In this document: piece after piece, positions 8,068 to 46,603 of the stretch
Layout: each line of letters opens with the position of its first letter
Position numbering within the stretch: position 1 is the stretch's first letter
NCBI GenBank assembly: GCA_052426225.1
Contig: JBNJNM010000014.1
Span: forward strand, 186,001-250,000
Direction: 5' to 3'
Origin: Zancudomyces culisetae HAW-14-8
Taxonomy: Eukaryota; Fungi; Kickxellomycota
DNA: 64,000 nt
The notes under the pieces: model-generated
Database searches by the model: none
The model's input: the letters and a program-made list of their open reading frames with translations, nothing else
What the model was told of the DNA's origin: nothing
Translations under genes and position numbers: made by a program

Positions 8068-8622
8068 TTAGGTTCTCTTGACCTTGAGCCAAGCGTATGA
8101 AACTGCATTTCCACCAAGAACATCAGCTACATTGGCAATGGTCTTGGATGATGATCTACGGACCACTTGGCATTTTCCAGTACAATCCTTTGCTGCACAT
8201 ACCACAATAACACCCTTTCCTGGCTTGGTCAATCCACTCTTCTTTCCGAGCTTGATTGATGCAAATTCATCAGTGTTGTAGCACTTTCCGCGTCTGACGC
8301 TGCGCTTGCTGATTTTTTGACCAAAGTTAGCAGTCTTGTACAATCTAACACTTGTTCTCTTGGCCTTGCGTCCACCACTGGCACGACCACGCATATCATT
8401 GAATTCACAACCAGACATATCGTTATTGTATTCATAATCAGCTAGGTAGTTGTCGTATTCGGAATCAGCAAGATCGTTGTTGTATTCAGCATTAGCAAGA
8501 TCGTTGTTGTATTCAGAATCGGCAAGACCATTGTTATATTCCTTTTGAGTACTGTTGAGGTTCAATGCACTGGTCAAGGCTGAACCGAAAAGCAAGGCGC
8601 TGACTAAAGTTGGCTTGAACAT
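8068..8622 (-). CDS. Small secreted precursor: signal peptide, acidic repeat propeptide, cationic Cys-containing domain (family member 1)
   Basis: MFKPTLVSALLFGSALTSA signal; (EYNNDLADS)-like 9-aa repeat x4-5; RKAKR basic site; basic C-terminal domain containing CY...PGKG.I..C....C.G.C...VLGG.A.S..W. Confidence 0.85.
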   Translation of the reverse strand: MFKPTLVSALLFGSALTSALNLNSTQKEYNNGLADSEYNNDLANAEYNNDLADSEYDNYLADYEYNNDMSGCEFNDMRGRASGGRKAKRTSVRLYKTANFGQKISKRSVRRGKCYNTDEFASIKLGKKSGLTKPGKGVIVVCAAKDCTGKCQVVRRSSSKTIANVADVLGGNAVSYAWLKVKRT

Positions 8623-11442
8623 TTTGGCTATTTGTGGTTTCTGTTGGTTTCTGTTGGTTTGGTTTGTTTTGTTTTTGATCTATTTGCTTTATTTCCTGTC
8701 GAAATGATGTTGTGTTTTATTTAAATTATGTGGTAAAAACCCTACTCTTATATACTTTTGAGGGAGTTGAGCTAGTTATACTATTCACATTGTTAATACA
8801 CTAATACACAAGATAATGTGAATACCACTCAATAGCCTGTATAAGCTGTAATACACTCGCAAATTATTTGTTGGAGAAGGCTTTGTATATCAATATTGTG
8901 GTCTAGAATAGTATCAATAGCACATAGGTATCTTCAAGTATATCTTTTTCTTGCAATTATATTGTATTTCCAAATATATTCATACATCTAGTTTATTTGA
9001 ATAAACCCGCCTTTAAATTCTAGCAATTGTACATCTTTGTTGCTATGTGGGCAATTAAAAGTCACACTACTCTAGACTTGGCTCTTATTTGAAGCTGGTT
9101 TAGTTGAATAGATCGGCGCTTATCAGTTTTGTTTTTTGGAGAGACATCAGCTGAATTATCACTGGTAGTAAATAAAAAATAAAAAATAGAGAAACAATAA
9201 CAGTATTTATAGTGTAAGTAGTCGTTGTAGAAGATAATAATTGTAATTCCATTTGCCAGAGTTGTATCCATTCTGTTGTAGCTATTTAATGGAACAGCGA
9301 ATTTGTAGATCAAGAAATATATTAATTTTGAAATCGACAACAGTCTCGCCAATTAATGCTATTTTTTTAAAAAAAAAGTCTACTGGTTTATAATACGATC
9401 AACTAAAAGAACCAAGAACACTTTTGATAATGAGAAGGATCTAGTATTTTGGTGATCAAATTCGTTAAACTTGATTGCTGCCATTAGTTTCAAAAGTTTG
9501 GGTATATAGTTGAAACTTAATAATGATTTTAAGGAAAAAAAAAGTCAAAATGGAAATTAGAGTAAGTCGAGATTTGGGCACGTTTTCAACTAACAGTTCA
9601 TAAATATGAAGTCCTTAGATATACAGAGTGAGATTGGTTATATTGGTATTTATTTATTCACTCTTCTTTTACCAAGTTTAGAAATGTACATTGGCGATAC
9701 AACACCAACTCTTGTTAATTTCCAAGTTATCTTGTTTTATACTTACTTTTATATACTGGAAATTGTAAAAAAAAAAAACAAATGCAATAAGGCTTGGTTG
9801 TTGGATTAAAAGCAGTAAAAGATTGAAATACTGTGAATGTATTTTGGGCTGAATGTTCGTTTTGGCAAGTGTTTACTTGAAATACTAATTCTACTCGAAT
9901 ATAAAAAATGAAATGAAAAGGATGGTAAGTTTCATTACTACTGGAGATGGCGGAGGAAGGGAGGTGAGAATACATTTAATTTTTAAAACAGGGACGATAC
10001 AGAATTCGGCTAGTTTGATTTAAAAGGTTTATATTGTCGAAACTGAAGAATTTTGTAAAAGGTCATAATTAATTGTATGTTTGATTGCAAATTTTATGCA
10101 AGAGGAAATAGTAAATATGTTTGGGAGGGAGGGATGGAGGGGTATGAGGAAGTGGTTTGGAGGGTTGCATTAAAAACCTATTGATAGGCAATCTATAAAA
10201 TTAAAAAATAAAAGTAAAGTTGAAAATTTCAAGCAATGTACAACTATGGGCTGTCACAAGTTATAGTGAGGGTTGGAGAGGAGGATGAATGGTTGTAATT
10301 GGTATTCATTTTTATATATCAATGCATTTGATTAAATAAACAAAAGCTAAGCCACTATCTTCCTCCCCCACTCCCCTCCACAAAACAAAAAAAGAGAGGT
10401 AAAAACCTATGTTTGTAAACTTAATTGGGGTGAAAATACTTGCAAGAAGCAAATGAATCAAAACTACAAAATAAAAGCTCTATTTAACACTTAGGATACC
10501 TGTTTACATGGATTTTCATAAATTGCCATTTAATTTTCTCAAAACTGAATAATTGATTGGGATAAAGATAATTAACCGAGCCATTTCTTGGCTATGGGAA
10601 AATGATTCGTGTTTTAAATGAGAGCAGTAGCAGCACAATCTAATAAATGTCTTGTACTAATTATAAACTACTAGTTTAATTTTTTTAAATTTTTTTAAAA
10701 GCTTTGAGATGGAATATATCAAACTCAACTATAAAAGAGAACAATAATATCATGAAGAAGCCGCGAATTATTCAGCTTTGAAACTTGTGTTGAATGTAGA
10801 ACCTTTTAATACTCTACATATTTTCTCACGCAACTATACTTGATTTGCCAAAAATATATATTTTAATTTATTTTCTGCTATTAATTGAAATTAACCAAAA
10901 AGTAAAATTGTAAAATGTCTACAAGAAACGGATTTTTGGCACCACTAGAATAATACAAGTCGAATTACCATAAAACAAAACAAAACAAAAATGAATAAAA
11001 AAATGAATAAAATTAAAAAATCAATTATAGCAAATAAAATTGATTTGATCAAACAAATCATCGTTTATTTTTTTTTCCTGGGTAATTTTTTTGCATATCA
11101 GCCAATTTTTTAGTATATTTATTTGCTTTTGTGGCAGAGTAGCTTTACAATTTAAAATATAAGCAAAAAATATTTTTTTTTGTTTATACATTTTAATAAA
11201 ATTATTAAAGTTTGGAAAAATCGTTTTTGGCCAACCAAAGTTATCATATTGTCATTTCTGAACGCCTTGTTTTAACACTGTACAGAATTAGATTGAACAA
11301 AAAAATTGATAAAAAGTAAAAATGATAATCAAAGACTAGAATCGATACTCAAAAAACAAACAAAACAAAACAAAACAAAAGAAATACCTAATATATTATC
11401 AGTTGAACTAGCATAGAATAGATAGGATAGATATATAGACAA

Positions 11443-12324
11443 ATGGCGTGTACACAATTACCAAAGCGGCTGTTGAGAGGCCTACCAGCCGTAGCTCTGG
11501 TTTTAGGCGTTTTTGTAATAATAGTAGTATACATGTTTGAAGTACGAGTCGTGTTGGTTACAAAGCAATACACGCCCATAATATCAAAGCAAGAAAAACA
11601 CGATCCACCAACGTTTGAAAATCCGACGCTTAGCGATGACGAATTTGCGTCACTCGCAAAGGTAACGCAGTGGAAGTCGGCGAGTGTTATAGACCGGCTA
11701 CCAAGACACAATACAACATATCACCAGCTGACCCACGAATATGCAGTGCTTACACCTATTGGCCCCGATGACGATATTTTTTGGACCAAGAATCTATACT
11801 CCGACTTCAACCTTTTCCTAGTCTGCGACCACGACGACAGCCGCGCCGAGTGCGACTACCGGCTGCCCGACAACTATGTATACAAAACACTTCCGAAAAA
11901 GACGTTCGATATGCTCCAGATTTTTTGCTTAGGCTCGCACAACTACAAGGCAATCTTCAAGCTCGATTTTGACGTGCTCCTAGACAAGAGATATTTTCTC
12001 GATGTTCTCGAGTTCATGATCGCCAATCACCAACGCCGACTGTACTACGGCTCAGCCCTCCAGTGTGCTGATAGCTGTGAATTTTACATGGATGGTCCTG
12101 TATACGGCCTCTCCAGATCCCTCCTCGACGACTACTGTGCGTGCGATGTTGAGCGTCCGGATAGTGTCCACGAGGATGTCTGGGTCGCCATTACGCTCAC
12201 GGAATGTCTTTTGAAATCCGGTACCTTCAACAGTGAAAACCTTACCCTTATCGCGAGTAATGACCGCGGAGTTTTCCACAAAAAGTTTGCTGGAAAAAGA
12301 GTGAAACTGTATATTGGTTCTTGA
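11443..12324 (+). CDS. Type II membrane glycosyltransferase, GT31 (beta-1,3-galactosyltransferase/fringe)-like
   Basis: N-terminal TM anchor; motifs YKTLPKKT, IFKLDFDV (KxDxD), YMDGPVYGLSR and HEDVWV in the order expected for GT31. Confidence 0.75.
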   Translation: MACTQLPKRLLRGLPAVALVLGVFVIIVVYMFEVRVVLVTKQYTPIISKQEKHDPPTFENPTLSDDEFASLAKVTQWKSASVIDRLPRHNTTYHQLTHEYAVLTPIGPDDDIFWTKNLYSDFNLFLVCDHDDSRAECDYRLPDNYVYKTLPKKTFDMLQIFCLGSHNYKAIFKLDFDVLLDKRYFLDVLEFMIANHQRRLYYGSALQCADSCEFYMDGPVYGLSRSLLDDYCACDVERPDSVHEDVWVAITLTECLLKSGTFNSENLTLIASNDRGVFHKKFAGKRVKLYIGS

Positions 12325-12599
12325 TAAAGAGTAAACCTCTTTATTATTATTATTATTTTTTTTTTTTGCATGATTGAATTGTAAACTATTCAAAACAAAG
12401 CAAAGGAAGGAAAGTCAAGAAGAAAAAAAGTGTTTACAAGATAAATATAAACTTGATGATATATTATATTTTCAATAGTTTATTTAGTGTAATAATAATC
12501 AAAACCGTAAAATAAATGCAAAAATAAGATTAAAAGAAAGAAAAAGTGGTAAAAAAAGTATGTATAAATATAAAAAAGTGTAAAAAAACTCGGTTTGAT

Positions 12600-14921: not shown

Positions 14922-15473
14922 TAATTTCGATGTTTGACAATCCCTTTTTTCCTTTTAATTGAATATTACTTTTTTTCAATTTTCAATTTTTTTCGTCCTA
15001 CAATTATTTTATTTATTTATTTATTTATTTGTTTAGTTTAGTTTAGTTTAATGATTTTTTTTTTTTCCAAATCTCCAAAATCATAATGACAAATAATTTA
15101 AAAAGTTTACTGGAGTTTAATTCGCTCGCACATTAAGCGCAAAATTTTTTATATACATAATATATATATATTTTTTTCGCTTATTTTTCAATAACTCTTC
15201 TCCAGTTTCAAATGAGCTGGATTCAATCAATCATTCAATAATTCAATATTAGCAAAAAAAAATCAAAATTAAAAGAATTTTTATTTTTTTTTACATTTTT
15301 ATTTTATTTTATTTTTGATCTAGTAAATACAACATTGTTAACCAGAAAAATCAAAAGTAAACTTGTGGAAAAAGACAAAACTTTTGTTTCTCGAATTTTA
15401 AAGACTTTTTTTGTTTTTTTTTAATAACGTGCTTGGTTATTTTTTCTTAATATTTAATACTTAATACTGAAAA

Positions 15474-23488: not shown

Positions 23489-26400
23489 TTATAAAAGTGC
23501 AAATAGTTCATTTCTTATCGTTTCATCTAGACTATCATTATAATCAAATATCAACTGTAGTAGAGATTTATTTTTATGTGCGATCGCAGCCATAATACAC
23601 TGATTTAGTACACCATCCAAACTACAATCACATTTCAGTAAGAGTTCTGCAATATCTTTTCTATTTTCTTGGAATGTTTCCAATAGAATAAAGGACTCGA
23701 CAAGTATCATAGTGCTCCCTTCATCTGAATTGTTAGTTTTATCAAAAGTTATGGTTTTTATAGCCCTATCAAAAACAAATTTTGTAATATTCCTTGTCAG
23801 ACCAGCGTCACCAAACACAGGAGATAGGACTGTCGATGTTTTTTTGAGAATATGTGTATATGGAACTAGTTCAGGTATCCACGCACCATTATTTATCAAA
23901 ATTTCAAAGCTACCAAACTTTTTGTTTTCGAGTGATTCTCTAAGCCCGTTGTACGTTGTATTCTCAACTTTCGCACCATGTTCTAGAAGTAATTCGATGA
24001 TCTCGACATTTCCGTGACTGGCTGCTTCAGGTATTCCGGTATATTCTTCATTATCTAGTTTAGCGCCATGTTTTATCAGCAATCTAACCATTTCAAGATT
24101 ATTATTTTGGCATGCTTCTTTTATCCCATTCTGTTTGTATGTTCTAAGATTCAACTCTTTACTTAGGAGCCATTTGAGCATACACATATTGTTAACTTCA
24201 CAGATATTTCGAAGTATTATACCACGTCTATCATCGTGATAGTAGTAGTCATTTCTGTTCAATATTCCATTCATTATTTCTCTATTATCATTCTTTGCAA
24301 TAGCCTTATAGTAGCTTTCAGTATGAACACATAATTTTGAGTCTACGCTCAAAATAAGCTTGGCGATATATGTATCATTTGCAACACACGCTTCATAAAA
24401 CCCACTTTTACAACAATTTATCGGTTTGACGCGGTAGTCTAGCAGTGCTATAATCAGCTCTCTGTTTTTTGTTCTAAACAATTCAGAATAGTCAGTGGAA
24501 GCATAACGAAGCTTATCATAAGTTTTCGTGTTTATAATTCTCAACATTTCAATATTCTGGTTGGAAACCACTTTTTTAATTGCCTCGTTATCAATACACG
24601 AGTGGTTTGCATCATTAGTAGACAAGAGTTTAAATAGTTCAGTGTTATTGTTGTTTACTGTATCCAATAACCCATTAAAATCAGGTTTGACCGATGAGGG
24701 CCATATATCCCTACGAATAAGAGTCTGTACTAACTCAGTATTTCCAGCGTTAGAAGCATACTGGAACCCACGGAATGTTTCATAATTTATATTCACACCC
24801 TTTTCAAGTAAAAAGTTGACAATTTCAAGACTGTTGTTTTTACAGGCAATTTTCAGACCGTTGAACAAATCTTGCTTAATATCGAAACCAAGGCGAAGTA
24901 GCGTGGAAATTAAGTTTATACTATTAAGTTCACAAGCCATATCAGCCAATTCTGTCGAATTGTACGAAACGCCTATCCCATTATCAAGAAGTAAAGCTAC
25001 CAGCTCACAGTTCTTGTGTTCAACTGCATGTACAAATCCACATTCGTTAGCATTAAAGGAATCACTCTTGCTAAGCAACAGTTTTGCAATTTCCAAATTA
25101 TTGTTTTTACATGCTATCTTGATACAATCAGATACATCTTTGAAACCAACTCTTGCAAACGACAAATATTTCAAGTGCGCAATATCATTGAATTCACATG
25201 CTATTGTAATCATCTTGTCACAATGTTTTTCAAAATTTCCACCATTTTCAATAAATGGCTGCAAATTACAGATAGTTTTGGGTACATGTCGTAATACCAC
25301 GCTTGTACCGTCGTGTTTTGCTCCAAGCCCATGATTTATGAGTATTTTTAGTATATTCTGCCTCAAAACATCTATTTCTTCTATTATTTGTTGATAATAC
25401 TCATCGTTCACATTATTAGACTGATTTACTTTATTGATAATTGCTAATATTCTAACTTTCTGATCCGTTTCTGCTTGAGCAATAGCAGGTGTATTGTTTA
25501 TAATCGAAACTAAAAGTTCTCTCAATATGACCAAATAGCTATAATGTTCTTTATATTCCTTATTGTAGAATAACAGTTTCAACTCAATATCAATTTTCTC
25601 AAGCATATCATTAATCTCGCCATTGGAAAGTAGGTCAACTATTGTCTTGTAACCTATACAGTTTTTTTCAAAAGTAAAAAACTCGCAATGGTCACATAGG
25701 AATGTTAGTATCTGTTTGAAATTGCTAATATCTGCCTTATCGTCCGGTGATATAGTTATTTGTTTTCCTGGAAACAATCGATTCAGGATCTGGTAGCCTT
25801 TGTCTCTCACAACTTCAGTTAAACAACAATTCTCATTTCCCTCCAATGTAGCACTCATTTCAAATAACCTTTCTACCAGTTTCAGCTCAAGGTTACTACA
25901 TGCAATTCGTAGAGCATAGTTTTTTGGTTCAATAACGTTCACACCAGCATTCAATAGCTTTATCAACAGAACTATATCATCTGATAAATATATTCTTGAT
26001 AACAGGGTGCTTATTTTGTCTTTAGAATACTCCAACTTCAAATATACGTTAGTGAGAAGATCAATATCGTGAGTTATTGCAACCACATCAAACACCAGTT
26101 CCTTATTGGTCTCAAATAACTTGTGGCTGATCAAAGCTCTTGTTAATCCTGGCCGATTTTCTATAATCGAAATGTAAATAGAAAAGAGATACACCTGGTT
26201 CAAACCCAAGTCGACCTCTTTTGTCAGTACATTAAACTTTTGGAGTTTCATTTTCATGAAATCGTTGGTACCAAGTTCGGTGACTATATATTCAAAATCG
26301 AATTTATACTCAATGTCTATCATGTACAACATAATGTCAAGTCGATTGAGTGAAATGGAATTGTAGATTTTGTGCACCAGATAATATCCCATAATGAGAT

Positions 26401-27256
26401 TGTCAGACAACCTTAGACTTTCTAGTTGATTTTTGAGATTTTTATCCTTTTTCTCGATATGTGAGGTATCAATAGGTATGTTGTACAGCTTTAGAACTTG
26501 CTTGATTTCATCTAATCCTTCGGCTTCAGAATTCACGGAATTGCTGTAATAGTAAAACAGCACACTGAAACCACTACCTTTGCTAAAACATCGTTTGAAA
26601 GTTTTCACATTGTCAGAGAAATGCCAAGTCAAGGATTTTTTGTGATTCGGTTCAAAATGAGCATAGAACAGAGGAACTACCAAGTAATCTTTCGTCTGGA
26701 TAGCTATACTTTGAAAATAATCATCCTCTGTGTTGTACCAATCATATTCTATCACAAATTTGTACCCCTCAAGCAAATTTGTGTTCTCAAATAGAATTTT
26801 GTTGCCATTTTTATCGTATACTAAATAAAATGAGGTAAGTTTTTCAACAGTTTTATTCCATTTCTGTGATGTTGCAAAATCTAACAACCTTGAGTACGGG
26901 ATTCTGTTAAAATGTGACAGTAAGCCTATAGATATTAACTCGTGCTTCGCAATTGATGGATATCTTTTGAGAAAAATTAGATAATTTTTATACATATCTA
27001 GGTCTTTGGAATATCGATCTTGTACATAGGATTCATAATAATCATATCTATAGTAGTTATTACATATTTTTTCATGGTCTTTTTTGTATTTCTTAAAAGT
27101 CTCCTGAATTAAGAGCCCTAACAAATTTGAATTATCCACAGCATTATAAAAATTCCTGGTAAGTGTTGATAAACAAGGATCGCCAGAGTATGAAAGTATT
27201 CGGAACGCAATTTCTTCAGTGAGTTGGTTAAAGGTTATTTTCGTTTGTTTACTCAT
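23489..27256 (-). CDS. F-box-like N-terminus plus long ankyrin-repeat protein (1255 aa, intronless)
   Basis: N-terminal FNQLTEEIAFRILSY resembles the F-box L..LP.EI...I..Y. Many ankyrin repeats follow (IACKNNSLEIVNFLLEKG, EAASHGNVEIIELLLEHGA). Confidence 0.85.
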   Translation of the reverse strand: MSKQTKITFNQLTEEIAFRILSYSGDPCLSTLTRNFYNAVDNSNLLGLLIQETFKKYKKDHEKICNNYYRYDYYESYVQDRYSKDLDMYKNYLIFLKRYPSIAKHELISIGLLSHFNRIPYSRLLDFATSQKWNKTVEKLTSFYLVYDKNGNKILFENTNLLEGYKFVIEYDWYNTEDDYFQSIAIQTKDYLVVPLFYAHFEPNHKKSLTWHFSDNVKTFKRCFSKGSGFSVLFYYYSNSVNSEAEGLDEIKQVLKLYNIPIDTSHIEKKDKNLKNQLESLRLSDNLIMGYYLVHKIYNSISLNRLDIMLYMIDIEYKFDFEYIVTELGTNDFMKMKLQKFNVLTKEVDLGLNQVYLFSIYISIIENRPGLTRALISHKLFETNKELVFDVVAITHDIDLLTNVYLKLEYSKDKISTLLSRIYLSDDIVLLIKLLNAGVNVIEPKNYALRIACSNLELKLVERLFEMSATLEGNENCCLTEVVRDKGYQILNRLFPGKQITISPDDKADISNFKQILTFLCDHCEFFTFEKNCIGYKTIVDLLSNGEINDMLEKIDIELKLLFYNKEYKEHYSYLVILRELLVSIINNTPAIAQAETDQKVRILAIINKVNQSNNVNDEYYQQIIEEIDVLRQNILKILINHGLGAKHDGTSVVLRHVPKTICNLQPFIENGGNFEKHCDKMITIACEFNDIAHLKYLSFARVGFKDVSDCIKIACKNNNLEIAKLLLSKSDSFNANECGFVHAVEHKNCELVALLLDNGIGVSYNSTELADMACELNSINLISTLLRLGFDIKQDLFNGLKIACKNNSLEIVNFLLEKGVNINYETFRGFQYASNAGNTELVQTLIRRDIWPSSVKPDFNGLLDTVNNNNTELFKLLSTNDANHSCIDNEAIKKVVSNQNIEMLRIINTKTYDKLRYASTDYSELFRTKNRELIIALLDYRVKPINCCKSGFYEACVANDTYIAKLILSVDSKLCVHTESYYKAIAKNDNREIMNGILNRNDYYYHDDRRGIILRNICEVNNMCMLKWLLSKELNLRTYKQNGIKEACQNNNLEMVRLLIKHGAKLDNEEYTGIPEAASHGNVEIIELLLEHGAKVENTTYNGLRESLENKKFGSFEILINNGAWIPELVPYTHILKKTSTVLSPVFGDAGLTRNITKFVFDRAIKTITFDKTNNSDEGSTMILVESFILLETFQENRKDIAELLLKCDCSLDGVLNQCIMAAIAHKNKSLLQLIFDYNDSLDETIRNELFALL

Positions 27257-28172
27257 TGTAACTATAAAAAAACTTGTGAGATTTTTGAGATATTGTAGTT
27301 GAGATGAACACGAGGTTTAAATATATACAATATAAATAACTTATTGTTAAGTTTAAAAAGTATATAAGGTTGGTTTTTAAATTGGGAGGGAAACTATGGG
27401 ATTATATATCAAAACATATCGGTATGTCAAAAGTATAAGGAAAGCTATAGGAATATTGGTTAAATGTACTTCCATATCTAAGTGTAAGAGTATATTACGA
27501 ACACGAAGTTGGGGTGGATAAAAGTTGAAATTGGTTTATAGAAGGTACATTTTCTTTCCAAAACTTTCTTTTTTCTAGAAAGAATGAGCTTGCCCAATGA
27601 AAAAATAATTGCGCTGTATTTTGCAAGCTGATATAAAAAAACCCAAAATGGTATCTGCAAAGAGTAGAGTGTGTATCTTTTGCATATTATGTACAAACTG
27701 CATAAGCTACTGAATCAGCTTTGGTCTATTATTTGTGGAAAATTAATCAATTTTGATATTTTAGTGTGATGACAGGGGTAGCGGAGTCTAAGAATACGCT
27801 GATGGATGATACACGTTTCAGTTGACTATCCACAGTAATAGAATTCTTGGGGAATAGTATTGCAAAACATTCAACTAGTATCTACATACTGTGCTATTGT
27901 TAAATTTTAGGGTTGTACTCTGTTTTTCTTATTGTTTGATACCAACAACAGCCATGTCGCATCAATTTCACTACAAATCAAAACTGGAAGCACATCTTTG
28001 TTGGATTGACGCTTTTCTATATTATTAACAGCATGCAGTATTCAAACTAGCCTTACAATAATGAACTCTATACAATACAAAATAAATACCATGCTCTTAA
28101 ATGCAGGCTTGTTTACTAACATCCTCAAAAATGCAAAGATTGAAACACAAAATGGGTAAAAATAAAAAATCA

Positions 28173-29849
28173 TCACAAAAGATGACACGCCAATTTGGCT
28201 AACTGAACCTCTAACCCCTTGTAATCAGGATCGCCAGAGGTGGAGAATTGAGTCAATAGCTCAGAGATTGATGACAAAGTACGAGGGACATCCTCGATAA
28301 TACAGCGAGGTGCAAACGTTGGTGTAGAGGGATGTGCATGGTTGCAGGAAGACAGAAACTCTGTTAGTTCTGAATCAGTTGAACATACTTGCGAGTGTGA
28401 CGAGTGGTTTGAGGATGGTGACTGAAATGGTTGCTGAGTGTGTTCAGGAGATACCAGTGCTGATAGATCGGAAACACCAAACTCGGGAAAATCGACTTTT
28501 TTCCGTGGAGTGGATCGTGAAGTTGGTGATGATGTGGGGTTGAGGCAGTCCAAAGCAGCAGAAACAAATTCAAACGCACCCTTTGATAGTTCGTTTGACT
28601 TCTTTGAAAAAAAGGTATCCAGAATGGGCGGGAGAGCATCACCAGAGTTGCCTAGAAAATATCTAAGCGAAATAAGGTATTGAAGCCCCAAATCATCACC
28701 AACAATTGATAGTAGGGGATTTGAAAGTGTAGAGCTGTGTTTAGGACCCAGATCAATATGAGGTGTGGTTGTATTATTTCGGTTAGAATCGTGTTTGCTA
28801 TTATAGAACTTTGAGAGTGGATCCACAAAAAAGTTGTTGTACATATAGTGGTTTGGGTGTTTGGAGGGAAAATCTATAGATGAAGGATCCAAAGATCCAT
28901 CTGGTAGCACTGTGGGTTTGGTACTTGGCCCATCTGCCACTTTCTTGCTTGAAATTGATGCTTTTTGTTTACTATGCTCTGTAAATGAATAATCTTTATA
29001 AATCTTGTTGACATGAGGCGTATCAGCAACCAGGGCTTCATTCTTCAGCACATCAATAGGCTCAGTCGTGTGATCATTGTCCAACACCCATAGTTTTTGC
29101 TTTTCTACTTCCTTTTTTATCAGTTTGCGCCCAAACTCCAGCATTCTTTGTATGTGTTCGTAATATTTACGATTAGGGTGGCTCTGTCTTTTTGAGTTTT
29201 TACACATTAACACAAAATCTGCCTTAAACTGCTCGATCTGCTTGTATTTCCCCCTCTCAACCCTTTTTTTCATTATTTCTAAACTGATAGGGTTTTTGCT
29301 GATCTTTGGGTGGTGTTGAGTTTGTTTAGAGCTCATAGGCGTTTGAAACATCGTGTATTCATCCTTTTTATTGAGCTTTCGCAGAATCTTCAGCATTGCT
29401 TTATTAGTATCCCGCGATTTCTCTACACACTCTTCTCGGTTCTTCGGAGCTTCGTATGTTAGTTTCAGTCTCTTACCACGTGGAGCATATCCATTTTGGT
29501 TTACATCCATACGTTTCCTTGTGGCAGGAATAGAGTTTGTGAGTTTATTGTAGCTTTCCCTGATATTTTTGCTCAAGGAAAACTCAGGATATAGCCTCTT
29601 CACTGCTGATAGGTTTATTTTTATTTTTATCCCACTACTCTTTTCAGTTACTGCCATACTGGTTTGATCAAGAGAACTGGGCTCGATTGAGTTTCCTAGA
29701 TTTTCTTGATCTCTTTTTTCAAAGCCCTGTTTACTTCTGAACTTGATTGTTATCCTTTTGACCTTTACTGGCTTCTTGGTTGTCCGTACCTCGTTATCGG
29801 CTATCCTGGATGGCGTGTTGTTGAGTATCAGATGGCATCCTACTCACAT
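28173..29849 (-). CDS. Bromodomain protein, BRD7/BRD9-like with a degenerate pocket
   Basis: LNKKDEYTMF..P.....ISKNPISLEIMKKRVERGKYKQIEQFKADFVLMCKN resembles the BRD7/9 bromodomain. The frame stays open upstream of 29657 to 29805; the start at 29849 is tentative and needs a 42-nt intron. Confidence 0.75.
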
Positions 29850-31057: not shown

Positions 31058-31060
31058 GAT

Positions 31061-31132
31061 CTCCGATACGGGGAATCGAACCCCGGCCGTCTCGGTGAAA
31101 GCGAGAAATCCTAGCCACTGGACCATATCGGA
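31061..31132 (-). tRNA. tRNA-Glu(TTC)
   Basis: TCCGATA...TATCGGAG acceptor stem; anticodon arm TCTCG-CT-TTC-AC-CGAGA; GGTTCGATTCCC T-arm; 72 nt, no intron. Confidence 0.97.
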
Positions 31133-31141
31133 ATATCAGAA

Positions 31142-31213
31142 CTCTCGGACCGGGAATTGAACCCGGGTCTCCAATGTGACAGACTGGGATACTGACCACT
31201 ATACTATCCGAGA
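31142..31213 (-). tRNA. tRNA-Asp(GTC)
   Basis: TCTCGGA...TCCGAGAG acceptor stem; anticodon arm CCAGT-CT-GTC-AC-ATTGG; GGTTCAATTCCC T-arm; 72 nt. Confidence 0.97.
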
Positions 31214-32365
31214 ATTTTTTTGTTAAGCGTTTTGTATGTATCTGTTTGTAATGTATATATTGAGCAGTTTAGTTTTGTTTTTGATTTGGTTTTTCTTGAT
31301 TTTGGGTTAGTTGTTGTGGATTTAGAAGCGTTCAGGTTTAACTCTGTATGTTGGCTTTAATTATTATACTGATAATACCTAAAATACTTTTATTTTCATT
31401 AGTTGGGGATGGTTCAGAATTGATGATTTAATTGTGGGTTTTTGCTTTATTTAGAGTAGATTGAAAATTGCAAATAAAATTATAAATATCTAGTCTTACT
31501 GGCTTTAACTCATTGAATGTGCAACTTTAATTGACATTTTGAACTTTTTGAACCTTAATTGATATTTTTATTTTTATGCAGAAATTGTCTGTTATCTAAC
31601 TCTACAGATACTAATTGAAATATTTCATTTCAATATCTTTACTCGTTATGTTTGTATGATAGAGTGTTTGTAATTCCAAGTGTTTTATTTAATTAACATG
31701 TTTATTATCGCTTGATATTTTTTTAATAGTAGTTAATCTGTTTAACACTTTTGCATATTATTGTTTAGTTTAACTTTATCCATTCATTTTTATGGATAAA
31801 GTAAAATTGATTAATGCTAGCCACACCAATAACTTAATACCAATATTATCATTTCCTACGATTCTTTATAGGGCGGATATTACGTCTGATATATTGTTTT
31901 CTTTTTTTTAAATGTCATAAACCACTATTAAACAATTAAATTAACATTTAAAATAATATCATACATTATTTAGATGAATCAGACTATGAATATTAAACTT
32001 AGTCAACACTGAAACAACACAACTGCAATGTTTACTTAAAATAGGTCATTACTTTTAACTACATTTTATTTATGTAGTATTTTAGCCTTTAGTATTAAAT
32101 TTTTATTTTACAAACAAAACGTATAAATATCTGTCTTTATTCCTTTCTGAAATACTTATCTGACAACAAGTGTCAAAAATAAATATAACTTTAGTAGTAC
32201 TTAATAATCTCAGAAATTTCAACAAATAAACAAGTTCATGACAATGTTATCAAATTCCTTTAATAACATAGTATTAGCAACAATATAAGAGTTGGTACTA
32301 TAAAAAACTACAAGTCTGCTATCATCGATATTAATGCTGAATGGCGAACATATAGCAGCGATATT

Positions 32366-33161: not shown

Positions 33162-33193
33162 CCCACCCAATTCCCACCCATACCTAGCTCAAC

Positions 33194-33517
33194 GATGGTA
33201 AAGATTCATCAGGAAACAGGGGACATCAGTTTATATATGGTTTAAATTTATTTTATTTAGTTAGTTTTACTTATTTTATAAAAATTATACAGTGATGTCT
33301 GTCATTACACACATCATTACGTATAAAGTTTCTAAATTGAAACACTCTTTTTATCGATTTAATTATTTACCAAATTTTAAGGTAATGGATTAATCGATAA
33401 AAATAGTATCTAGGAAAGAATTTTCGATTTATAATAAAGATTGGTACACACACATAATTGTATCTGGATGTTCGCATAATAATAATAAGTTTTCATTTCA
33501 TTCAACTAAACATATTA
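33194..33517 (+). repeat. DIRS right terminal repeat plus right extension
   Basis: 33194-33469 is near-identical to 42625-42900; the extension ends ...TTCAACTAAACATATTA. Confidence 0.9.
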
Positions 33518-33990
33518 AATTCTAACCTACTTCATAGTACATGTTATTCGTGACCAATTGTTTAAAGGATAATCCTCAAAGCGTACCATATTAGTATATC
33601 ATAAATTAGCAATAAATGTATAGACATAGAGAATGTAGCTATATTATATTTGTATAGTCACATACACACATTAGAGATATGCACCATGGAAACTACTACT
33701 ATTTTAAACTAGTAATATCTCAAAATTAGCCAAAAGTTGTATGACTGTTTTAAAATGCAGTGGATTGTACTTTTTTTTTTACAAAACTAGCAAAATAACC
33801 TATACATTTACTTTTGTAGCACTTTTTCCAACACGTTATACTTGATTTATACTCTAGGCTTATTCAAAACAAATATGTATATAATCCCAGCTGGTTTGAA
33901 GATGTATTATGAATTAAAAAATAAATAACGATTGAAAGATATACCTGTTTACCAATAAAAAAAATCAAAAAAATCAAAAAAATCAAAAAA

Positions 33991-34387
33991 ATTATAGCTG
34001 GAACTACTGCTTTGAGACTAACCTTGGCAAATAGCATGGGAGACTCGATTTATGCCATCATAACAGAAACTCAATCAGACAAAACAGACTTTATTCTAGC
34101 CGAAATCACAGCACTTGGATGAAAATCGAAGTGTTCCGAGAGCAGTATTTCCGCAATCCAGCTGATACCATAAACATAAGGCCTAACAGGTGTGTTTCTT
34201 TACCAAGTATCCAATCACTTCAGTTTGATAGCGGATATCCAGTACGCGGATGGCTGCACTGTGTAGCAGCAGTGATTATAGCGGATAGTGTGTAACTGAA
34301 CGTAGAAAAACCTGGCTTTACCCACAAAGCAATGATGCTGACAAGGTTGAAGGACCCGCCAGCTTTATGACCTTGTTCTTAGCATAA
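33991..34387 (+). pseudogene. Pseudogene of the small secreted Cys-protein family (member 2)
   Basis: From 34119: MKIEVFREQYFRNPADTINIRPNRCVSLPSIQSLQFDSGYPVRG, then a frameshift into AALCSSSDYSG*CVTERRKTWLYPQSNDADKVEGPASFMTLFLA*. This aligns with the 46352 ORF. A signal-peptide-like remnant IIAGTTALRLTLANS lies upstream in another frame; TAG at 34286. Confidence 0.7.
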
Positions 34388-39786: not shown

Positions 39787-41651
39787 TTAAACCCGTTTTT
39801 TCAAGGCGTGCGCGCTTAATTTCCAAGCCGTAAGCGACCATGTTTTGTTTATCTGTGTCACTTGCTTTCCGCTTTTTGGATCCGGAATTATATGTGGAGC
39901 TAATATCTTGATCGGTGGAGCTATTAGCATGCTCTTGAGGTCTGGATACCATGGTGCTGACCTCCAAAACGGTGTTATCAATGTCGCTGATACTTTGTCC
40001 TGTCTGATCTTCTGTAGTGTTTTCTGTATCAGATTCCATGGTGGACAAAGGTATGGATTCGTCCAAATGCTCCAATGATGATTGAATGCATTCGTTTTCG
40101 CTGCTCCTGGTGTCCATTTCCAACTCACAAATGTTGGTAGTTTGTGGTTGTTGTTGTTGGCAAACATGTCCACATCGTGTGGACCAAACTGTTTCTGTAT
40201 CTTCTGAAACATCTTGTCTGATAGTGACCACTCTGTTTGAGCTGTTAAACGTGATGGTGCATCCGCTGGATTCAGTATTGATGGCACATACTGAATCTGA
40301 ACCCGAGTGCCACTGCTGATGCAATGTTTCCAAATTGCTTCCGAAATGTCCATCAGATTCACTGATTTGGTTCCCCCATGCTTCTTGATGTAGCTGATTG
40401 AAGTGTTGTTGTCGCAATATACAACAACACTCTTTCCCTGGACCTGTGGCAGCTTCACTGCATACTGGATTGCTAATAATTCCTTCGCATTGATAGGGAG
40501 CTTCATCTGTTGTCGTGTCCATGTCCCCGTATACTGATTGCTGTCTATCACTATCCCCCAGTGATTGTCGCTCGCATCCGTATATACTTCTATCTCTGGG
40601 ATCTCCGGAAGGAAGCATAGACCATTCCATTGCTTCAGATGGTCCCTCCACCACGTCAGATTGTCCAGTGCGGGCTGATTCAGTGTTACTTGTGAACTCC
40701 AATCCGTGGTGCGTTTCAGAGTGTTGTTTTTGGGCTCTAACAACCTCCTGCTCATCAGTCGTCCCGGTCTGAGTGCTATATTCACTGCCTGCGTTTTGCC
40801 AATGAATGATACCAGATTCTTCAGCGTTGTACGCCCTTTGTTTATCAACCTGGATGCCTCTCTCGCTAAATCTTTGAGTTTCTGTTTGGGTATTTTGAAA
40901 CTCATTTGACGGCTGTTGATGTTCATCCCAAGATGCGTAATACATTGTTTGGGATGTATTGATGACTTTTCCTGGTTGATCAGGAATCCCAGTTTCACCA
41001 GTTTCTTGGATACCATGTTTGTGAACTTTAGACACTCTGTTTTTGTTGATCCTAAGATTAACAAATTGTCTAAGTAGCTTGACATTCGTATCCCGCGAGC
41101 TCTGGCCCATTTCAGTACTGGTTTTAGTATTTTTGTGAATACTAGTGGGCTTAAAGATAGACCAAATGGGAGCACCCTGTACTGGTAGGTGCGACCGCCC
41201 CATGTAAATCTGAGATACTTTCTGGACGTTTGTTGATCAATACGTGTAGAAAAGCATCGCTGAGGTCTATGCTGGTCATATAATCCCCTTTGCGGATCAT
41301 TCTGGAGATAGTTGTGAGCGACTCCATCTTGAAATGTCGCTGTGGGATGTACTGATTTAACGGTCTTAAATTCAGTACCATCCGCGTGCCTCCGTTCTTC
41401 TTTGGGATTGTAAACGGATTTGAGTAGAACCCTGGCTGCGCGGATGAAGCTTCCTCTATTGCTTTCTTTGACAAGAGGTTTGTTATCTCCTGTTCGACCA
41501 CTTTTTCTGGAAGCTTTTTCAAGTTGTAACCGAACGGTTTTTTCTGCTTGACCGTCGGTGGATGCGTTTTGAAGGGGATTCTGAACCCTTCTGAAGTCAC
41601 TTGGAGTATCCATTTGTGATATGTGAGGCGCATCCAAGCCTTCTGGAACAT
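39787..41651 (-). pseudogene. DIRS pol: reverse transcriptase, RNase H, adenine-methyltransferase-like domain; frameshifted
   Basis: IPKKNGGTRMVLNLRPLN, SIDLSDAFLH, frameshift at ~41233, LPFGLSLSPLVF, YLDN (canonical YxDD), YTDAS, INAKELLA, CDN, NPADAPSR, DVDMFA...PPW. Confidence 0.9.
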
Positions 41652-41665
41652 CCTCAGTCTCCCTC

Positions 41666-42547
41666 CTACTTTCGGTGTTTGCTGCTGTTTGCAAACCGAA
41701 AATTACCGCCAGTAGCAGCGGATTTGTGTTGTCGTTGTTGCTGGATCTGTTGCGGCTCTGCTTGAACATTCTGGTTAACTGATGGCTGAAACGGGATGCT
41801 TGGGAAGGTCCTGGTTGCGTTGAATCTTGGTCTTCTCTGCTGCACATTTTTTGTTGCACGCTGCAATGTATTTGCAGCTGCTTTAACTTCGAGCATCTGC
41901 TGTATGTCCACGAGAGGCTTCTTTGATGATGAAGCCATTTCTGGAGGATCTGATGGTACTCCTGAGGCTTTGTATGACAGTTTGATTCTTTGTTGCGTGA
42001 TATTGGATGCAACATCCGCAAGTAAAACTCTGATTGAGTTGATAAAAACTGCAAGTTTTTCGGCACTGACTGCACCTCCGTCACGGATTGCTTCGTGCAT
42101 AAAGTAATCCAAAGGTCTTGTACCGGCTGATAAACGGTACTGGATGTCATATAACATCGCATCAGTACGTTTATTGTCACCTGATAACTTGATGTTTTCC
42201 TCTGGTGGTTCATAATCCATGCCAGAGTTTCTTGGGATGGCTGCGTAAAACTTCTTGCGTTCGACATCTGCCAGTGGTGTCCAAAAGAAATCCTGTTCAA
42301 CTGTTGGTAGCGCCTTTTGCAGTTTTGGATACATGACCAGGTCTGATGGTGATGGTCTGGCAACCACGAAGTTTTCAACTGAATCATCGTCTACTGCATC
42401 AACGATTGATGGAGCAGTGATGTTTGCTGAATCACTGATTTCTGATACGGACATGTTATCATTTGGTGCGGTTTGTTTTTCAAGAGCTGATAATCTCTCC
42501 AAAATCTGTTGCAAAACTTCAACTGTAACGTTTGCATTTTGACTCAT
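41666..42547 (-). CDS. DIRS ORF1 (gag-like)
   Basis: 293-aa ORF between the left ITR and the RT ORF, with an N-terminal coiled coil (LQQILERLSALEKQ). Confidence 0.75.
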   Translation of the reverse strand: MSQNANVTVEVLQQILERLSALEKQTAPNDNMSVSEISDSANITAPSIVDAVDDDSVENFVVARPSPSDLVMYPKLQKALPTVEQDFFWTPLADVERKKFYAAIPRNSGMDYEPPEENIKLSGDNKRTDAMLYDIQYRLSAGTRPLDYFMHEAIRDGGAVSAEKLAVFINSIRVLLADVASNITQQRIKLSYKASGVPSDPPEMASSSKKPLVDIQQMLEVKAAANTLQRATKNVQQRRPRFNATRTFPSIPFQPSVNQNVQAEPQQIQQQRQHKSAATGGNFRFANSSKHRK

Positions 42548-42624
42548 TATTGAAAATTTAACTAATGACTTTTATAAATACTATGTATTTTTTATAAGCT
42601 GGTTGAGTACCTAGCGAAAGAAAA

Positions 42625-42914
42625 GATGGTAAAGATTCATCAGGAAACAGGGGACATCAGTTTATATATGGTTTAAATTTATTATATTTAGTTAGTTTTA
42701 CTTATTTTATAAAAATTATACAGTGATGTCTGTCATTACACACATCATTACGTATAAAGTTTCTAAATTTAAACACTCTTTTTATTGATTTAATTATTTA
42801 CCAAATTTTAAGGTAATGGATTAATCGATAAAAATAGTATCTAGGAAAGAATTTTCGATTTATAAAAAGATTGGTACACACACACATATTGTATCTGGAT
42901 AAGTGAAGCATAAT
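42625..42914 (-). repeat. DIRS left terminal repeat
   Basis: Near-identical to 33194-33469; its outer end matches the first part of the ICR. Confidence 0.9.
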
Positions 42915-45900
42915 TACATATAGTTGGCTAAATAATCAATAACTTAATCATAGAAATAAATATTTATAATAAAATAACTTCAGATTTTTCATCGTATACT
43001 CGCTATACGACATAATTAGTTTTATGTGTAATATATTTACTGGAATATTGCATATTAATATATGATTAATTATCATGCTCAAATAGGCTATTGTTATACT
43101 ACGTTTATACTTAGGTTTAATGACATTAATTCTAAAATATTATAATACTTTTGATAAATTTTAAAGTTATAATTTAATTAGTTTGGTTTTGCCATTTCAC
43201 TTTAATCTATCAATGTTCCTAAATAAATTTAAACGATTCCACAGCAAACTAAACTTGAATATTTGTAATACGTCTTATTTGATGAATTATTTATAGTTTA
43301 TTTATTAGCAGCTTGCCTAATGCAACCCGTTTAATTGAAAGTAGCGGTGTCGGGAGGTCCAAATAGAAGTCCCAGAGACTAGTATTTAATAATTTGGTGT
43401 TTGAGTACATTCACCATAACAGCTTTTTTCTAACACATCAGTAGTCTTCTTTTCTATCAGTGGTGTTAAAGTATTGCCCTGATCTGCCTGGATTTTGTTG
43501 AACACTCATATTTTATTATTTGGAGTTCTTCCATGACTGCACCAGAGAAACGATAATTCGAAAATATTTTGGTGTGCAAGATTTAAAATTTAGCATTTAC
43601 TGGAAACGTGGCAACTACGGCCTCAAGAAGTGCTAGTGTTGACTTTACCGTATTTGATACTTGATTTTAAATATAATTTTTACAAGCTAATATACTGATA
43701 GAGTATGAACATGACTATGACAATGACAATGACCAGTTATGCTTTTTTATGGAATTCAACTGTTGATGTATATTTTCGAAGTCAGTAGATATGTTGGGCA
43801 ACTTACACCTCCCCCTATCCGACTTTTTTGTATAGTAGCCTTCAAATCGTATTAATGGTATCCACCTGTATTATTCTCATCTATTTTTTAGTAGTATTCT
43901 AATTTTAGAAGCTCAAGAATTCATTTTGACTTCAAAGTATTAGGCTGAATCAAAGTGTATTGAAATTTGATAGTTTAGGTGTTATGTATTAAACATTTTC
44001 TATTTTAATCTTTGACAGTTTTTCAATAACTTTTAGTCACACCCAGAAAATGGTAGTGTACTAGAACAAGTGTACTTTCTATGATACCTTAGTAAATTTT
44101 TCTCCTAATAGATATATCCTATCGTAACTGGAAGTTTAAAAAAAATTTGTAACTAGTTCCTAATAAAGTACTAACTCTGAACCTTTAAAACATTAGTCCC
44201 ATCATGTAAAAAAAGTTATTAATTAAATTAAATTATACAAATCGATTTAGTATTTTAGAATGTTGATCTAGATCGATATTATTAATTACTCTAAAAATAA
44301 CACAATTGCACAACATTCCCATTAAACAGAGAAAACAGACCCACATACCATTAGATGTTCTTGAAAAAGTGTAAAACAGAAAAAATAATCTGTTCCTGCA
44401 ATTTTAAGGAATACTATTCCCTATTTCCATTCTTCCCGACAAGAGCCAGTCATTGAGTCTAATTATTAGATTGGTAATAATTACAAATCTGTTATAAACC
44501 TAGAATTACGTTTTTAAACCTCTCACCAAGGAGTACACCACGTACCTAACAAGGCCTAGGGGTATTCTAAAAGTCGAGTAGCAACTTCAAGTTACCAGTC
44601 TCTAGGAAGGCAGCACTTACACTCATGGGTAATTCAAAAGTGTATTACTATTAATTAACTGAGTAGTAATAGACCCATTTCTAAATCAAAGTGTACTATC
44701 ATAGTCTTTTATAACCCGATAACAAGCTATATGAAAGCTAAATTTCGTGTAAAACAACATTCAAAGTAGAATTAAACATAATCATATTATTTTGAATGTC
44801 TAAATAAAAGCTATATGAACAAATATCTACAAGTTTCCACCAAAAAATTTACTTCTGGCTTATAATTATAAACAAACAAACCCATAGAAAATTATTTAAT
44901 TATTAGTATCATAGTATGGTCAACCAGGAGACAACACTATTATCATATTTTTTATACTCTGTTTATTTAATATGTAGATAATAGGTGTTTCCATAATAAT
45001 AGCTCGAATTTATTGATTCGATAAGTCGTAAAATTGCGAGTTTTTAGTTTTTTTATGCTTTATCCTCAAACACCTAAAAATAATGTAAAAAAAATTAATT
45101 CTAAATTTGAGTTGAAGATTTAACTCATTATTGTTCAAGATATTACATGAGAGCTTATAAATTTTATATGATATATTACCATAATTGGAACCATGAGCCT
45201 CCTAGTCTTGAAATGAACGGATAGAATCGCATAATTGTTATGTCAATGATCTCCAAAGGCTAAATGACAAATTTGTAAATTAATCCCGAAGTGAGTTTAA
45301 TAACCTTACTAGCTTAAAATCAGCCAATAAATTTATGTTTTAAAACTTGAATGATACTTCCAATCAATAAGGGATTAGACACCTCATAAGTTAATAAACC
45401 TTTGTATCACAATTACGTTGGTGTATGTAATATGTTGAACAAATTATATTGCTGATTACATTATAATTTAAAATAGAATTAACAAATTAGCAAAACTGGT
45501 GCACTTCGGGTCATTTTGTCCATTTTGAAATTATTTACGAAACTTGAATGCCACCGGTATCATCTATGCTGTGATATCGATTGCTTTTTTTTACTAGATA
45601 TTGTGCTTGTTGTGCGATAAAACTACTACTTAGCCTCATCAAAACATTACTATTATTATAATTCACGTGTCTCTCAAAAAACTGATATAGAATTACTAAA
45701 AATAATATTTTTTCTGTTTCTTTCACATGCAAAAGACCAGAAATATTCATTCTCTGGGTAGAAGCTTTAATTTTTCTAACCTTAGAGAAAATACTAGAGA
45801 AAGATTATTAAATTAGGAATCATAAAACAAGTTAAAACCCATTACATATTAACTCTTATACTTATTAATCAACTTATAAATAGCTTGAACTAAATATAGG

Positions 45901-46180
45901 TCTAATAATTTGAGTGAGCTATTGGAGAATTGGGTTTGCAAGTATATCGGATATATTGAAAATAGTTCTAGTGTTCATGGTATATTAGTTATCTGACTAT
46001 TTTGACTAGTAACTTTTAATTCGATAAACCATTTAACCTTATGATCAAAACAGTAACTACAAAAAAAAGTATACAATGTCCAAGTTTTTTTCAGAATCCC
46101 ATTCTCTACAATTCAAAATCGTTTAGAATTTTATCCTAGTTAAAAGGTGTATAGCTTGAATAGTTAAAAACTAAAGTAAA

Positions 46181-46603
46181 ATGGTAAGCATTTTGTTGAC
46201 AACCGCAGTTTTGATTGCCTCAAAGTTTGTAGCTGGTGCTAGCATCCCAGACACCCAGACGACCATTGCAAAAAGACAAGATGACGATAATCGCAATATC
46301 TGCTATTGAGACAATAAAAAGCAATACCCTGACAAATTTCTAAATATTGAAATGTTTGCACAAAGATCAAGGAAAAATAGAATCGGTACAAAGGTGATTA
46401 ATCCAAATCGTTGTTACATCATACCAACTACTGGTTCTTGCTTGCTTAATGGTGGCACGCCTGGTGAAGGCACAATAATGTTTTGCACTGGAACTAATTG
46501 CGATGGTTACTGCCGGGCTGGGCCAAGACAAGTCTGGTATACCCCCGGAGATATGCAGAAAGTTATTGGAGGGCTTGCAAATTCAGTTTATTGGACAATT
46601 TGA
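46181..46603 (+). CDS. Small secreted Cys-protein family member 3, with one in-frame TGA at 46307-46309 (pseudogene or recoding)
   Basis: MVSILLTTAVLIASKFVAGASIPDTQTTIAKRQDDDNRNICY*DNKKQYPDKFLNIEMFAQ... is in frame with the 46352 ORF. It has a signal peptide and KR site, and the domain is homologous to 8068-8622. Confidence 0.75.

Follow-up and report, generated by a model that had tools for sequence, protein, structure and literature searches.

What are the small, cysteine-patterned secreted proteins encoded at three dispersed loci of a 64,000-nucleotide stretch of the Zancudomyces culisetae HAW-14-8 genome, and how large is the family to which they belong? This stretch, hereafter the window, lies 186-250 kb into contig 14 of the assembly (GCA_052426225.1). 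Z. culisetae is one of the Harpellales, which inhabit the larval guts of mosquitoes, black flies and midges, and to our knowledge almost nothing is known of the molecules that these fungi release in the larval gut. A first-pass annotation of the window had proposed a three-member family of secreted proteins, with one intact, one interrupted and one frameshifted gene, a possible crystallin-like fold and a toxin, antimicrobial or effector function. Our analysis places the three loci in a large subtelomeric multigene family whose shared domain is predicted to adopt a β/γ-crystallin fold. Tentatively, the processed domains would act extracellularly against competing microbes in the larval hindgut lumen.

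Three loci share one domain

We scanned all six reading frames of the window, any stop being treated as X, with a family profile hidden Markov model (HMM) representing 49 non-redundant domains. The model detected exactly three members and no further matches: the gene at 8068 (8083-8352(-), E 2.5e-28), the copy at 46 kb (46340-46600(+), E 4e-32), and the copy at 34 kb, where the match begins in one frame (34119-34259, E 2.8e-12) and continues in another (34256-34360, E 0.0026). As this model contains close relatives of the queries, we also used leave-clade-out HMMs, from which the query's own clade or its entire superclade had been removed. The 8k domain scored 58 bits (E 3.5e-20) against an HMM from superclade II alone, and the 46k domain likewise scored 58 bits against one from superclade I alone. 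At the 34k locus, the leave-clade-out HMMs gave 30-50 bits for the first piece and 6-22 bits for the second. Because HMMs without the query's own clade or superclade still score, the three loci are, on profile evidence, truly homologous. The common domain seen in the first-pass annotation is thus confirmed, with cross-clade E-values of ~1e-20 and a similarity above the level of shuffled controls.

The domain is predicted to be a β/γ-crystallin with an unusual disulfide

One domain from each superclade was modeled using AlphaFold2 with the paralogue alignment. The 8068 domain gave a pLDDT (predicted local distance difference test) of 87.3 and a pTM (predicted template modeling score) of 0.78, and the 46k domain 96.8 and 0.87, respectively. 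Both models display an identical eight-strand layout, consistent with a single fold across distant members. In a Foldseek search of the PDB, the first 50 rows were all β/γ-crystallin domains for both models (template modeling (TM) score 0.5-0.65, probability 1.0), and the E-values of these matches were modest (3e-3 to 5e-2). VIA-align, which is independent of Foldseek and covered 48,161 chains, returned lens β/γ-crystallins, the Ciona crystallin, geodin, spherulin 3a, Protein S, Neurospora APP and IPSE/alpha-1 with Z-scores of 8.3 to 7.0. MiAMP1 (Z 6.2-6.9), WmKT (5.4-5.7) and SKLP (3.9-4.8) scored lower. The top ~25-30 rows are nearly all from the crystallin superfamily (Z 8.3-4.3), with crystallin-like accessory domains of larger enzymes (4NI3, 3UJZ, 9GSM) and the viral protein 3RJ2 mixed among them, and unrelated folds, such as viral jelly rolls, appear at Z ≤4.1. 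The first-pass annotation, which had likened the domain to WmKT and MiAMP1, was therefore right about the superfamily fold, but the nearest structures are the canonical crystallins (Z 7-8.3).

Conserved residues were compared with the canonical hairpin signature of each Greek key, [YFW]-x4-[YF]-x-G. The second motif reads [C/Y/F]-x4-C-x-G in 48 of 49 representatives, with Gly60 in 59 of 62 sequences, and cysteine replaces both aromatics in most members. In the first motif no glycine is conserved; an aromatic occupies position 6 in 47 of the 49 representatives and position 11 in 32 of them. The structural serine that precedes the last strand of each motif is kept (Ser33, 53/62; Ser86, 61/62). 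Strands are slightly more conserved than loops, a difference that is not significant. Independently, a language-model feature search led to clusters carrying Crystall or Inhibitor_I36 (score 0.91). A Z-score of about 8 alone would be middling. Because the match list is exclusive, the two models agree and both the serines and, in its cysteine-bearing form, the hairpin signature of the second motif are conserved, we consider the predicted fold firm: a β/γ-crystallin domain of ~90 residues made of two four-stranded Greek keys.

At the sequence level, as judged by profile searches, the family stands alone. No crystallin-type or other relevant Pfam family matched any of the 49 members at E ≤10, and none matched the two window proteins. 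A profile search of PDB sequences returned no crystallin, with chance matches to antibody complementarity-determining regions and similar sequences. The Ca2+-binding motif N/D-N/D-x-x-S/T-S was found in 0/49 members at site 1 and 0/49 at site 2.

The cysteine pattern that had been noticed in the window is confirmed as C-x27-C-x4-C-x-G-x-C. Among 62 sequences, many of them 20-30% identical, Cys25, Cys58, Gly48, Gly60, Ser33, Ser86, Ala84 and Trp89 vary little or not at all. Cysteine occupies both position 53 and position 62 in 52 sequences and neither of them in the other 10, and a mixed state never occurs. This covariation indicates two predicted disulfides, C25-C58 and C53-C62. The former would join the two Greek keys, and the latter would replace the canonical aromatic corner. 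Where the Cys53-Cys62 pair is absent, position 53 is Tyr or Phe in nine of ten cases, and the Tyr form is that of the Smittium culicis and Furculomyces relatives. The extra disulfide thus seems to substitute for the aromatic residue that is canonical in the second Greek key.

Predicted secreted preproproteins with variable linkers

For the protein architecture, 98 open reading frames (ORFs; 91 distinct) were taken from 100 fetched loci of the at least 144 found, and signal peptides and Kex2 sites were called by sequence heuristics. Typically, a single exon encodes, in this order, a signal peptide, a linker or propeptide that varies between members, in many cases a dibasic site, and the ~90-aa domain. 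Of the 85 sequences long enough to judge, 75 have a hydrophobic N-terminus and 51 a [KR]R site no more than 12 aa before the domain. The hydrophobic N-termini and dibasic sites reported for the window are confirmed. These features suggest that the products are probably Kex2-processed secreted preproproteins. The mature domains are mostly basic, with a median isoelectric point (pI) of 9.1 and a pI above 8.5 in 36 of 49 representatives. In the 8068 protein, a propeptide of pI 4.2 precedes a mature domain of about +16.

The linkers are highly variable, change fast, are of low complexity and consist of acidic 9-aa repeats or of His-rich, Gly-rich or Ala/Pro-rich segments. The number of acidic 9-aa repeats differs even among near-identical copies. 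Four subtelomeric members (L045, L055, L041 and L076) carry long His runs, His-Gly repeats or His-Asn repeats directly before the domain; such His-rich linkers could bind metals or serve as pH-sensitive propeptides. Two members with long spacers are atypical: L099 (692-1630(-) = C6:1594889-1595830), of 313 aa, and L100 (299-952(+)), of 218 aa. Their spacers are rich in Ala/Thr/Ser/Val or in Pro/Ala/Arg, and L099 lacks the C53-C62 pair and keeps the Tyr. From their composition, both look like wall-linked or mucin-like variants.

The family might have a structural, adhesive or stress-related role in the thallus, the holdfast or the spore wall, in the manner of Myxococcus Protein S, Physarum spherulin 3a, the abundant perithecial protein (APP) of Neurospora and Dictyostelium DdCAD-1. 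Proteins of this kind are the closest microbial structural matches (Z 7-7.9), and the Ala/Thr/Ser/Pro-rich spacers of L099 and L100 resemble those of wall-linked proteins, but the Ca2+ motif on which these proteins depend is absent at both sites from all 49 members. More than 140 deeply diverged copies would also be unusual for a structural protein, and a propeptide with a dibasic site is typical of released products. We regard a structural role as rather improbable and keep to the antimicrobial reading, under which the domains would be released.

A subtelomeric multigene family

We searched the full assembly (27.1 Mb, 25 contigs) with the two window proteins using tblastn. This gave 148 and 123 matches, which merge into at least 144 loci, so that the family is not one of three members, as had been thought, but a far larger and largely subtelomeric one. 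Copies 84-100% identical to the 8068 protein at the protein level are found elsewhere in the genome. About 14 loci (~10%) contain stops or frameshifts, and the remainder (~90%) are open, with frames 135-215 aa long. NCBI lists, as a 'hypothetical protein' of Z. culisetae, a sequence 100% identical to one of the intact paralogues. A word-based protein search with the family alignment yielded four proteins only, all from Z. culisetae. In exact-sequence look-ups for transcripts and assemblies, P0001 was found only in the old NCBI draft genome and the 8068 protein had no match.

Of the 119 loci on contigs whose length is known, 55 (46%) are no more than 50 kb from a contig end, where 4.6% would be expected (p = 5e-41). 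Among the matches listed, a TTAGGG array ends contig 6; across the genome, each strand has ~2,400 matches. At five or more ends, four family genes of different clades form a cassette with a constant gene order and with spacings of ~4.4, 5.6 and 10.9 kb that are kept within ~250 bp (examples in Table 1). Several chromosome ends therefore have subtelomeric blocks of over 35 kb in common. The concentration at ends and the blocks shared between them make this a subtelomeric multigene family. The three copies in the window belong to its dispersed internal fraction and sit amid segmental duplications and a DIRS-type retroelement. The sequences indicate that the family grows and shrinks through segmental duplication and exchange between chromosome ends, and that intact copies are retained under purifying selection. 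Copies dispersed in the chromosome interior, among them the two broken genes of the window, decay.

The subtelomeric genes could also form a contingency repertoire, a library reshuffled between ends from which different subsets are expressed in each host or microbial community. We regard this as a long shot; if true, it would amount to a programmable secreted arsenal shaping the mosquito gut microbiota or host physiology.

Relatives, phylogeny and selection

A profile search of 1.84 billion representative proteins gave 47 matches at E ≤1e-3. Every small match that was looked up comes from the Harpellales, namely Z. culisetae, Smittium mucronatum, Smittium culicis and Furculomyces boomerangus, so that, at the sequence level, the family is indeed lineage-specific, as first suggested. 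NCBI names all of these Harpellales relatives 'hypothetical protein', and a few have an automatic name in UniProt. The S. mucronatum protein P0005 (OLY84601.1), a secreted protein of 296 aa with three tandem domains, is the sole multi-domain architecture seen in the family. The large multi-repeat matches (P0030-P0035, P0039, P0044) carry fn3, Ig-like or other unrelated domains and were rejected as compositional artefacts.

P0043, a metagenomic multi-crystallin protein, is a borderline match (E 2.6e-4). Because hhalign gives it a probability of 13%, we do not claim it as a member at the sequence level. P0043 is the sole non-Harpellales match with a real crystallin domain, and it matches both I36 and Crystall_3. 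With the Inhibitor_I36 annotation of the feature-search clusters and the protease-rich habitat, it speaks for SMPI-type protease inhibitors (MEROPS I36) that would shield the fungus from larval digestive proteases. The 49 members, however, include no match to Pfam I36 (PF03995) at E ≤10, and SMPI is not among the top 50 structural matches; together with the hhalign result, this leaves the inhibitor reading quite improbable.

In a maximum-likelihood tree, the Z. culisetae genes fall into two well-supported superclades (98/98). One contains the 8k gene; the other contains the 46k and 34k copies, in different clades. Sister to this second superclade are the sequences from Smittium and Furculomyces, with the root placed at the midpoint only. 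This topology implies that a large part of the expansion occurred in the Zancudomyces lineage alone.

Pairwise Nei-Gojobori dN/dS of the domain has a median of 0.37 and falls to 0.11-0.12 in recent pairs (dS <0.3). When the 8068 gene is compared with the three contig 14 copies closest to it, identity is 96-98% in the coding sequence (CDS) and ~93% in the flanks. The low dN/dS, with a CDS conserved above its flanks, therefore points to intact genes maintained by selection. These data bear on a further possibility, that the ORFs are functionless passengers of subtelomeric repeats whose pattern reflects shared descent of junk DNA. Such a view could appeal to the stops or frameshifts in ~10% of loci and to the two dead copies among the three of the window. 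We consider it very improbable, given that ~90% of loci are open, that recent pairs have a dN/dS of 0.11, that the CDS is more conserved than the flanks, that Cys, Gly, Ser and Trp are invariant across sequences 20-30% identical, and that relatives are conserved in other Harpellales genera.

State of the three window copies

The three gene copies of the window differ in their preservation (Table 1), largely as first described. The gene at 8068 is intact and the 46k copy has a single in-frame TGA. The 34k copy, taken to be frameshifted, is more broken than that.

The TGA of the 46k copy sits between the signal peptide and linker and the domain, and corresponds to an ordinary sense codon in the intact 140-aa paralogues of contigs 8, 9, 13, 21 and 23. 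A twin on contig 21 is 97.6% identical across all 3.2 kb compared (the duplication extends over at least 3.2 kb). The same TGA is present in this twin, which furthermore lacks the first Cys, a residue otherwise invariant in the family. The shared stop is therefore older than the segmental duplication, and the two copies have been drifting since. Z. culisetae uses selenocysteine and has the machinery for it (PMC12611240, citing Mariotti 2019). No element resembling a selenocysteine insertion sequence (SECIS) was detected within ~1 kb of the TGA, and we thus read the 46k copy as a gene most likely to be a young pseudogene. Selenocysteine insertion or readthrough at this TGA is unlikely, considering the missing SECIS-like match, the sense codon of the paralogues and the twin without the invariant Cys.

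The 34k copy was aligned at the DNA level with three intact 135-aa paralogues. Its start codon (33982-33984) is gone, single-base deletions follow 34047 and 34251, a TAG lies in frame at 34286-34288, and an invariant Cys and the invariant Trp are replaced. It is ~77-78% identical to its relatives across ~1 kb, flanks included. By these lesions, it is an old pseudogene. The intact members of its clade are the telomere-proximal gene of the subtelomeric cassette.

Table 1. Features of the window, and examples of the four-gene cassette elsewhere in the assembly (C, contig; window positions unless a contig is given).
Feature	Position	Strand	Remarks
Intact family gene	8068-8622	-	Single exon, open ORF of 184 aa
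Signal peptide of the 8068 gene	8566-8622	-	Residues ~1-19; rule-of-thumb prediction
Propeptide of the 8068 gene	8356-8565	-	Residues 20-89; acidic 9-aa repeats, KR at end
Predicted mature β/γ-crystallin-fold domain of the 8068 gene	8071-8355	-	Residues 90-184; cationic, net charge ~+16
46k copy, 140-aa type	46181-46603	+	One in-frame TGA (46307-46309); domain 46340-46600
34k copy, decayed pseudogene	33982-34387	+	Third clade
Four-gene cassette	C13:17469-38806
Four-gene cassette	C11:22321-43620
Four-gene cassette	C7:1080293-1101428
Four-gene cassette	C14:600674-621898
Four-gene cassette	C21:3383304-3404611
Segmental duplication, first copy	23489-29657		Ankyrin-repeat gene and 494-aa bromodomain gene
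Segmental duplication, second copy	57051-63270		Same two genes
Split ankyrin ORFs of the second copy	57051-58826, 58772-60076, 60052-60867
DIRS-type retroelement ORF	39787-42387	-	866 aa
tRNA-Glu(TTC) and tRNA-Asp(GTC)	31060-31214	-	7 bp apart
Neighbor ORF	5921-6619	+	232 aa
Neighbor ORF	49528-50307	-	259 aa
Trypsin-family homologue	54622-55767	-

Other features of the window were recorded. A segmental duplication has left the ankyrin-repeat and bromodomain genes twice in the window; the ankyrin gene of the second copy is split into three ORFs, and the bromodomain gene is intact in both. The retroelement ORF combines reverse transcriptase, RNase H and a Dam-like methyltransferase, the domain set of the DIRS type, and 650-bp pieces of this ORF or its flank recur beside family members on the short contig C5. 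Two tRNA genes lie close together. The two neighbor ORFs, which have no Pfam match, and the gene for a trypsin-family homologue also lie close to the family members, and this region may be an island of genes for secreted proteins.

Function of the family

We place high confidence in the structural and evolutionary description of the family. What follows directly from the sequences is a set of ~130 maintained copies of a predicted secreted, probably Kex2-processed and disulfide-locked single crystallin domain. As a whole, our best explanation, to which we give a probability of roughly 0.45, is a Harpellales-specific secreted multigene family, massively expanded in Z. culisetae, with an antimicrobial or killer-type function in the hindgut lumen. 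That functional part, argued by analogy, is by itself tentative. It is suggested by small, stable and mostly cationic domains, by an acidic propeptide with a dibasic site, by a microbe-dense habitat, and by the precedents of WmKT and MiAMP1, antimicrobial proteins of crystallin fold, and of the crystallin-like proteins of Cladosporium fulvum, for which an antimicrobial role is suspected (10.1101/127746). The 8068 clade would be the clearest case, with an acidic propeptide that would mask the +16 mature domain.

Several points weigh against this explanation. The function is drawn from analogy, and a common fold is no proof of common function. Structurally, the models are closest to non-toxic crystallins, which score ahead of WmKT, MiAMP1 and SKLP. 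Several clades, including that of the 46k copy, are weakly basic or even acidic. The disulfide pairing is derived from covariation, not geometry. Finally, pervasive positive selection of the arms-race type is not seen in the pairwise dN/dS.

The same proteins could instead be host-directed effectors acting on the hindgut epithelium, its cuticle lining, or immune or developmental signaling, with the subtelomeric repertoire providing variation between hosts. Subtelomeric multigene families are typical of host-associated eukaryotes. IPSE/alpha-1, a schistosome egg protein that acts on its host, is among the better structural matches (Z 7.2-7.7), and the host range of Z. culisetae is very wide (PMC5026252, PMC12611240). 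Harpellales, however, grow extracellularly on a cuticle-lined hindgut, and their insect hosts have no adaptive immunity, the usual driving force behind variant repertoires. Moreover, recent paralogues are under purifying rather than diversifying selection, and no host-targeting motif was identified in the family. We thus judge host effectors unlikely, though less so than the structural or inhibitor readings.

If the products are antimicrobial, as we tentatively propose, or host-acting, they would be obvious first candidates for competition within, or alteration of, the gut of disease vectors. Harpellales have been described as poor in secreted proteins, with an average of ~730 signal-peptide proteins (PMC5954228). 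The long-read HiFi genome paper (27.2 Mb, 26 contigs, 8,484 genes) is silent on the family, on secreted proteins and on gene families (PMC12611240). About 130 intact genes would represent ~1.5% of the 8,484 annotated genes and a large share of the ~730 average.

Comparison with known systems

In its genomic organization, the family resembles the subtelomeric contingency families of other eukaryotes, Pneumocystis MSG, Candida glabrata EPA and Plasmodium var, which are likewise large paralogous repertoires at chromosome ends with shared subtelomeric blocks and frequent pseudogenes. Those families encode large surface proteins, whereas the Harpellales genes would encode small soluble secreted domains.

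Canonical crystallins (APP 5Z6E, spherulin 3a 1HDF, Protein S 1NPS, Ciona 2BV2 and lens proteins) superimpose on the models with Z 7-8.3, TM scores of 0.55-0.65 and root-mean-square deviations of 2.3-2.8 Å over 75-81 residues. Both Greek-key serines are kept in the family, and its second motif has a hairpin of the x4-C/aromatic-x-G type. Unlike them, the family is missed by Pfam Crystall (PF00030, Crystall_3), has no Ca2+ motif, is made as secreted preproproteins and, in most members, has a disulfide in place of the second-motif aromatic. Schistosoma mansoni IPSE/alpha-1 (4EL6) is, like the Harpellales proteins, a secreted crystallin-fold protein of a host-associated eukaryote (Z as above). 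It differs by its 8-12% identity, and host-cell uptake and immunoglobulin binding are features of IPSE.

The Williopsis mrakii killer toxin WmKT/HM-1 (1WKT), Streptomyces SKLP (1F53) and Macadamia MiAMP1 (1C01) are also basic, disulfide-rich, secreted single-domain double Greek keys, and WmKT is likewise made from a processed precursor. The Harpellales family may act in a similar way. The structural match to them is moderate, no sequence or Pfam match exists, and the number and placement of the disulfides differ. WmKT/HM-1 has a five-disulfide pattern and inhibits β-1,3-glucan synthase, compared with two conserved disulfides in the Harpellales family. There is no Pfam match to MiAMP1, and the Cys pattern C-x27-C-x4-C-x3-C is the family's own.

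The closest parallel in kind comes from plant-pathogenic fungi. Ecp4, Ecp7, CfCE44 and CfCE72 of Cladosporium fulvum are small secreted crystallin-fold proteins suspected of antimicrobial or effector activity (10.1101/127746), and a 'Crystallin' fold family has been defined among the orphan candidate effectors of plant-pathogenic fungi (PMC10462633). The Harpellales proteins share with the C. fulvum set small, Cys-stabilized, secreted single crystallin-type domains without a Ca2+ motif and a kexin site before the domain, which one C. fulvum protein carries. They have no detectable sequence similarity to it, and possess two predicted disulfides, one of them in place of the aromatic corner, in contrast to the MiAMP1-like spacing of the C. 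fulvum proteins. They also come from an insect-gut commensal of the Zoopagomycota, with at least 144 copies concentrated at chromosome ends as opposed to a handful. Among the orphan candidate effectors of fungi, secreted proteins of β/γ-crystallin fold are already a recognized structural class (PMC10462633; 10.1101/127746), and we therefore file the Harpellales family under a known kind of protein. Full-text literature searches returned no paper linking crystallins with Harpellales and none linking Smittium with subtelomeres. As far as these searches show, what is new is the sequence family itself, the predicted disulfide-for-aromatic variant of the fold, the restriction to Harpellales, and the scale and subtelomeric organization of the family, which would also be a clear case, found in nature, of a disulfide standing in for the aromatic corner of a crystallin fold.

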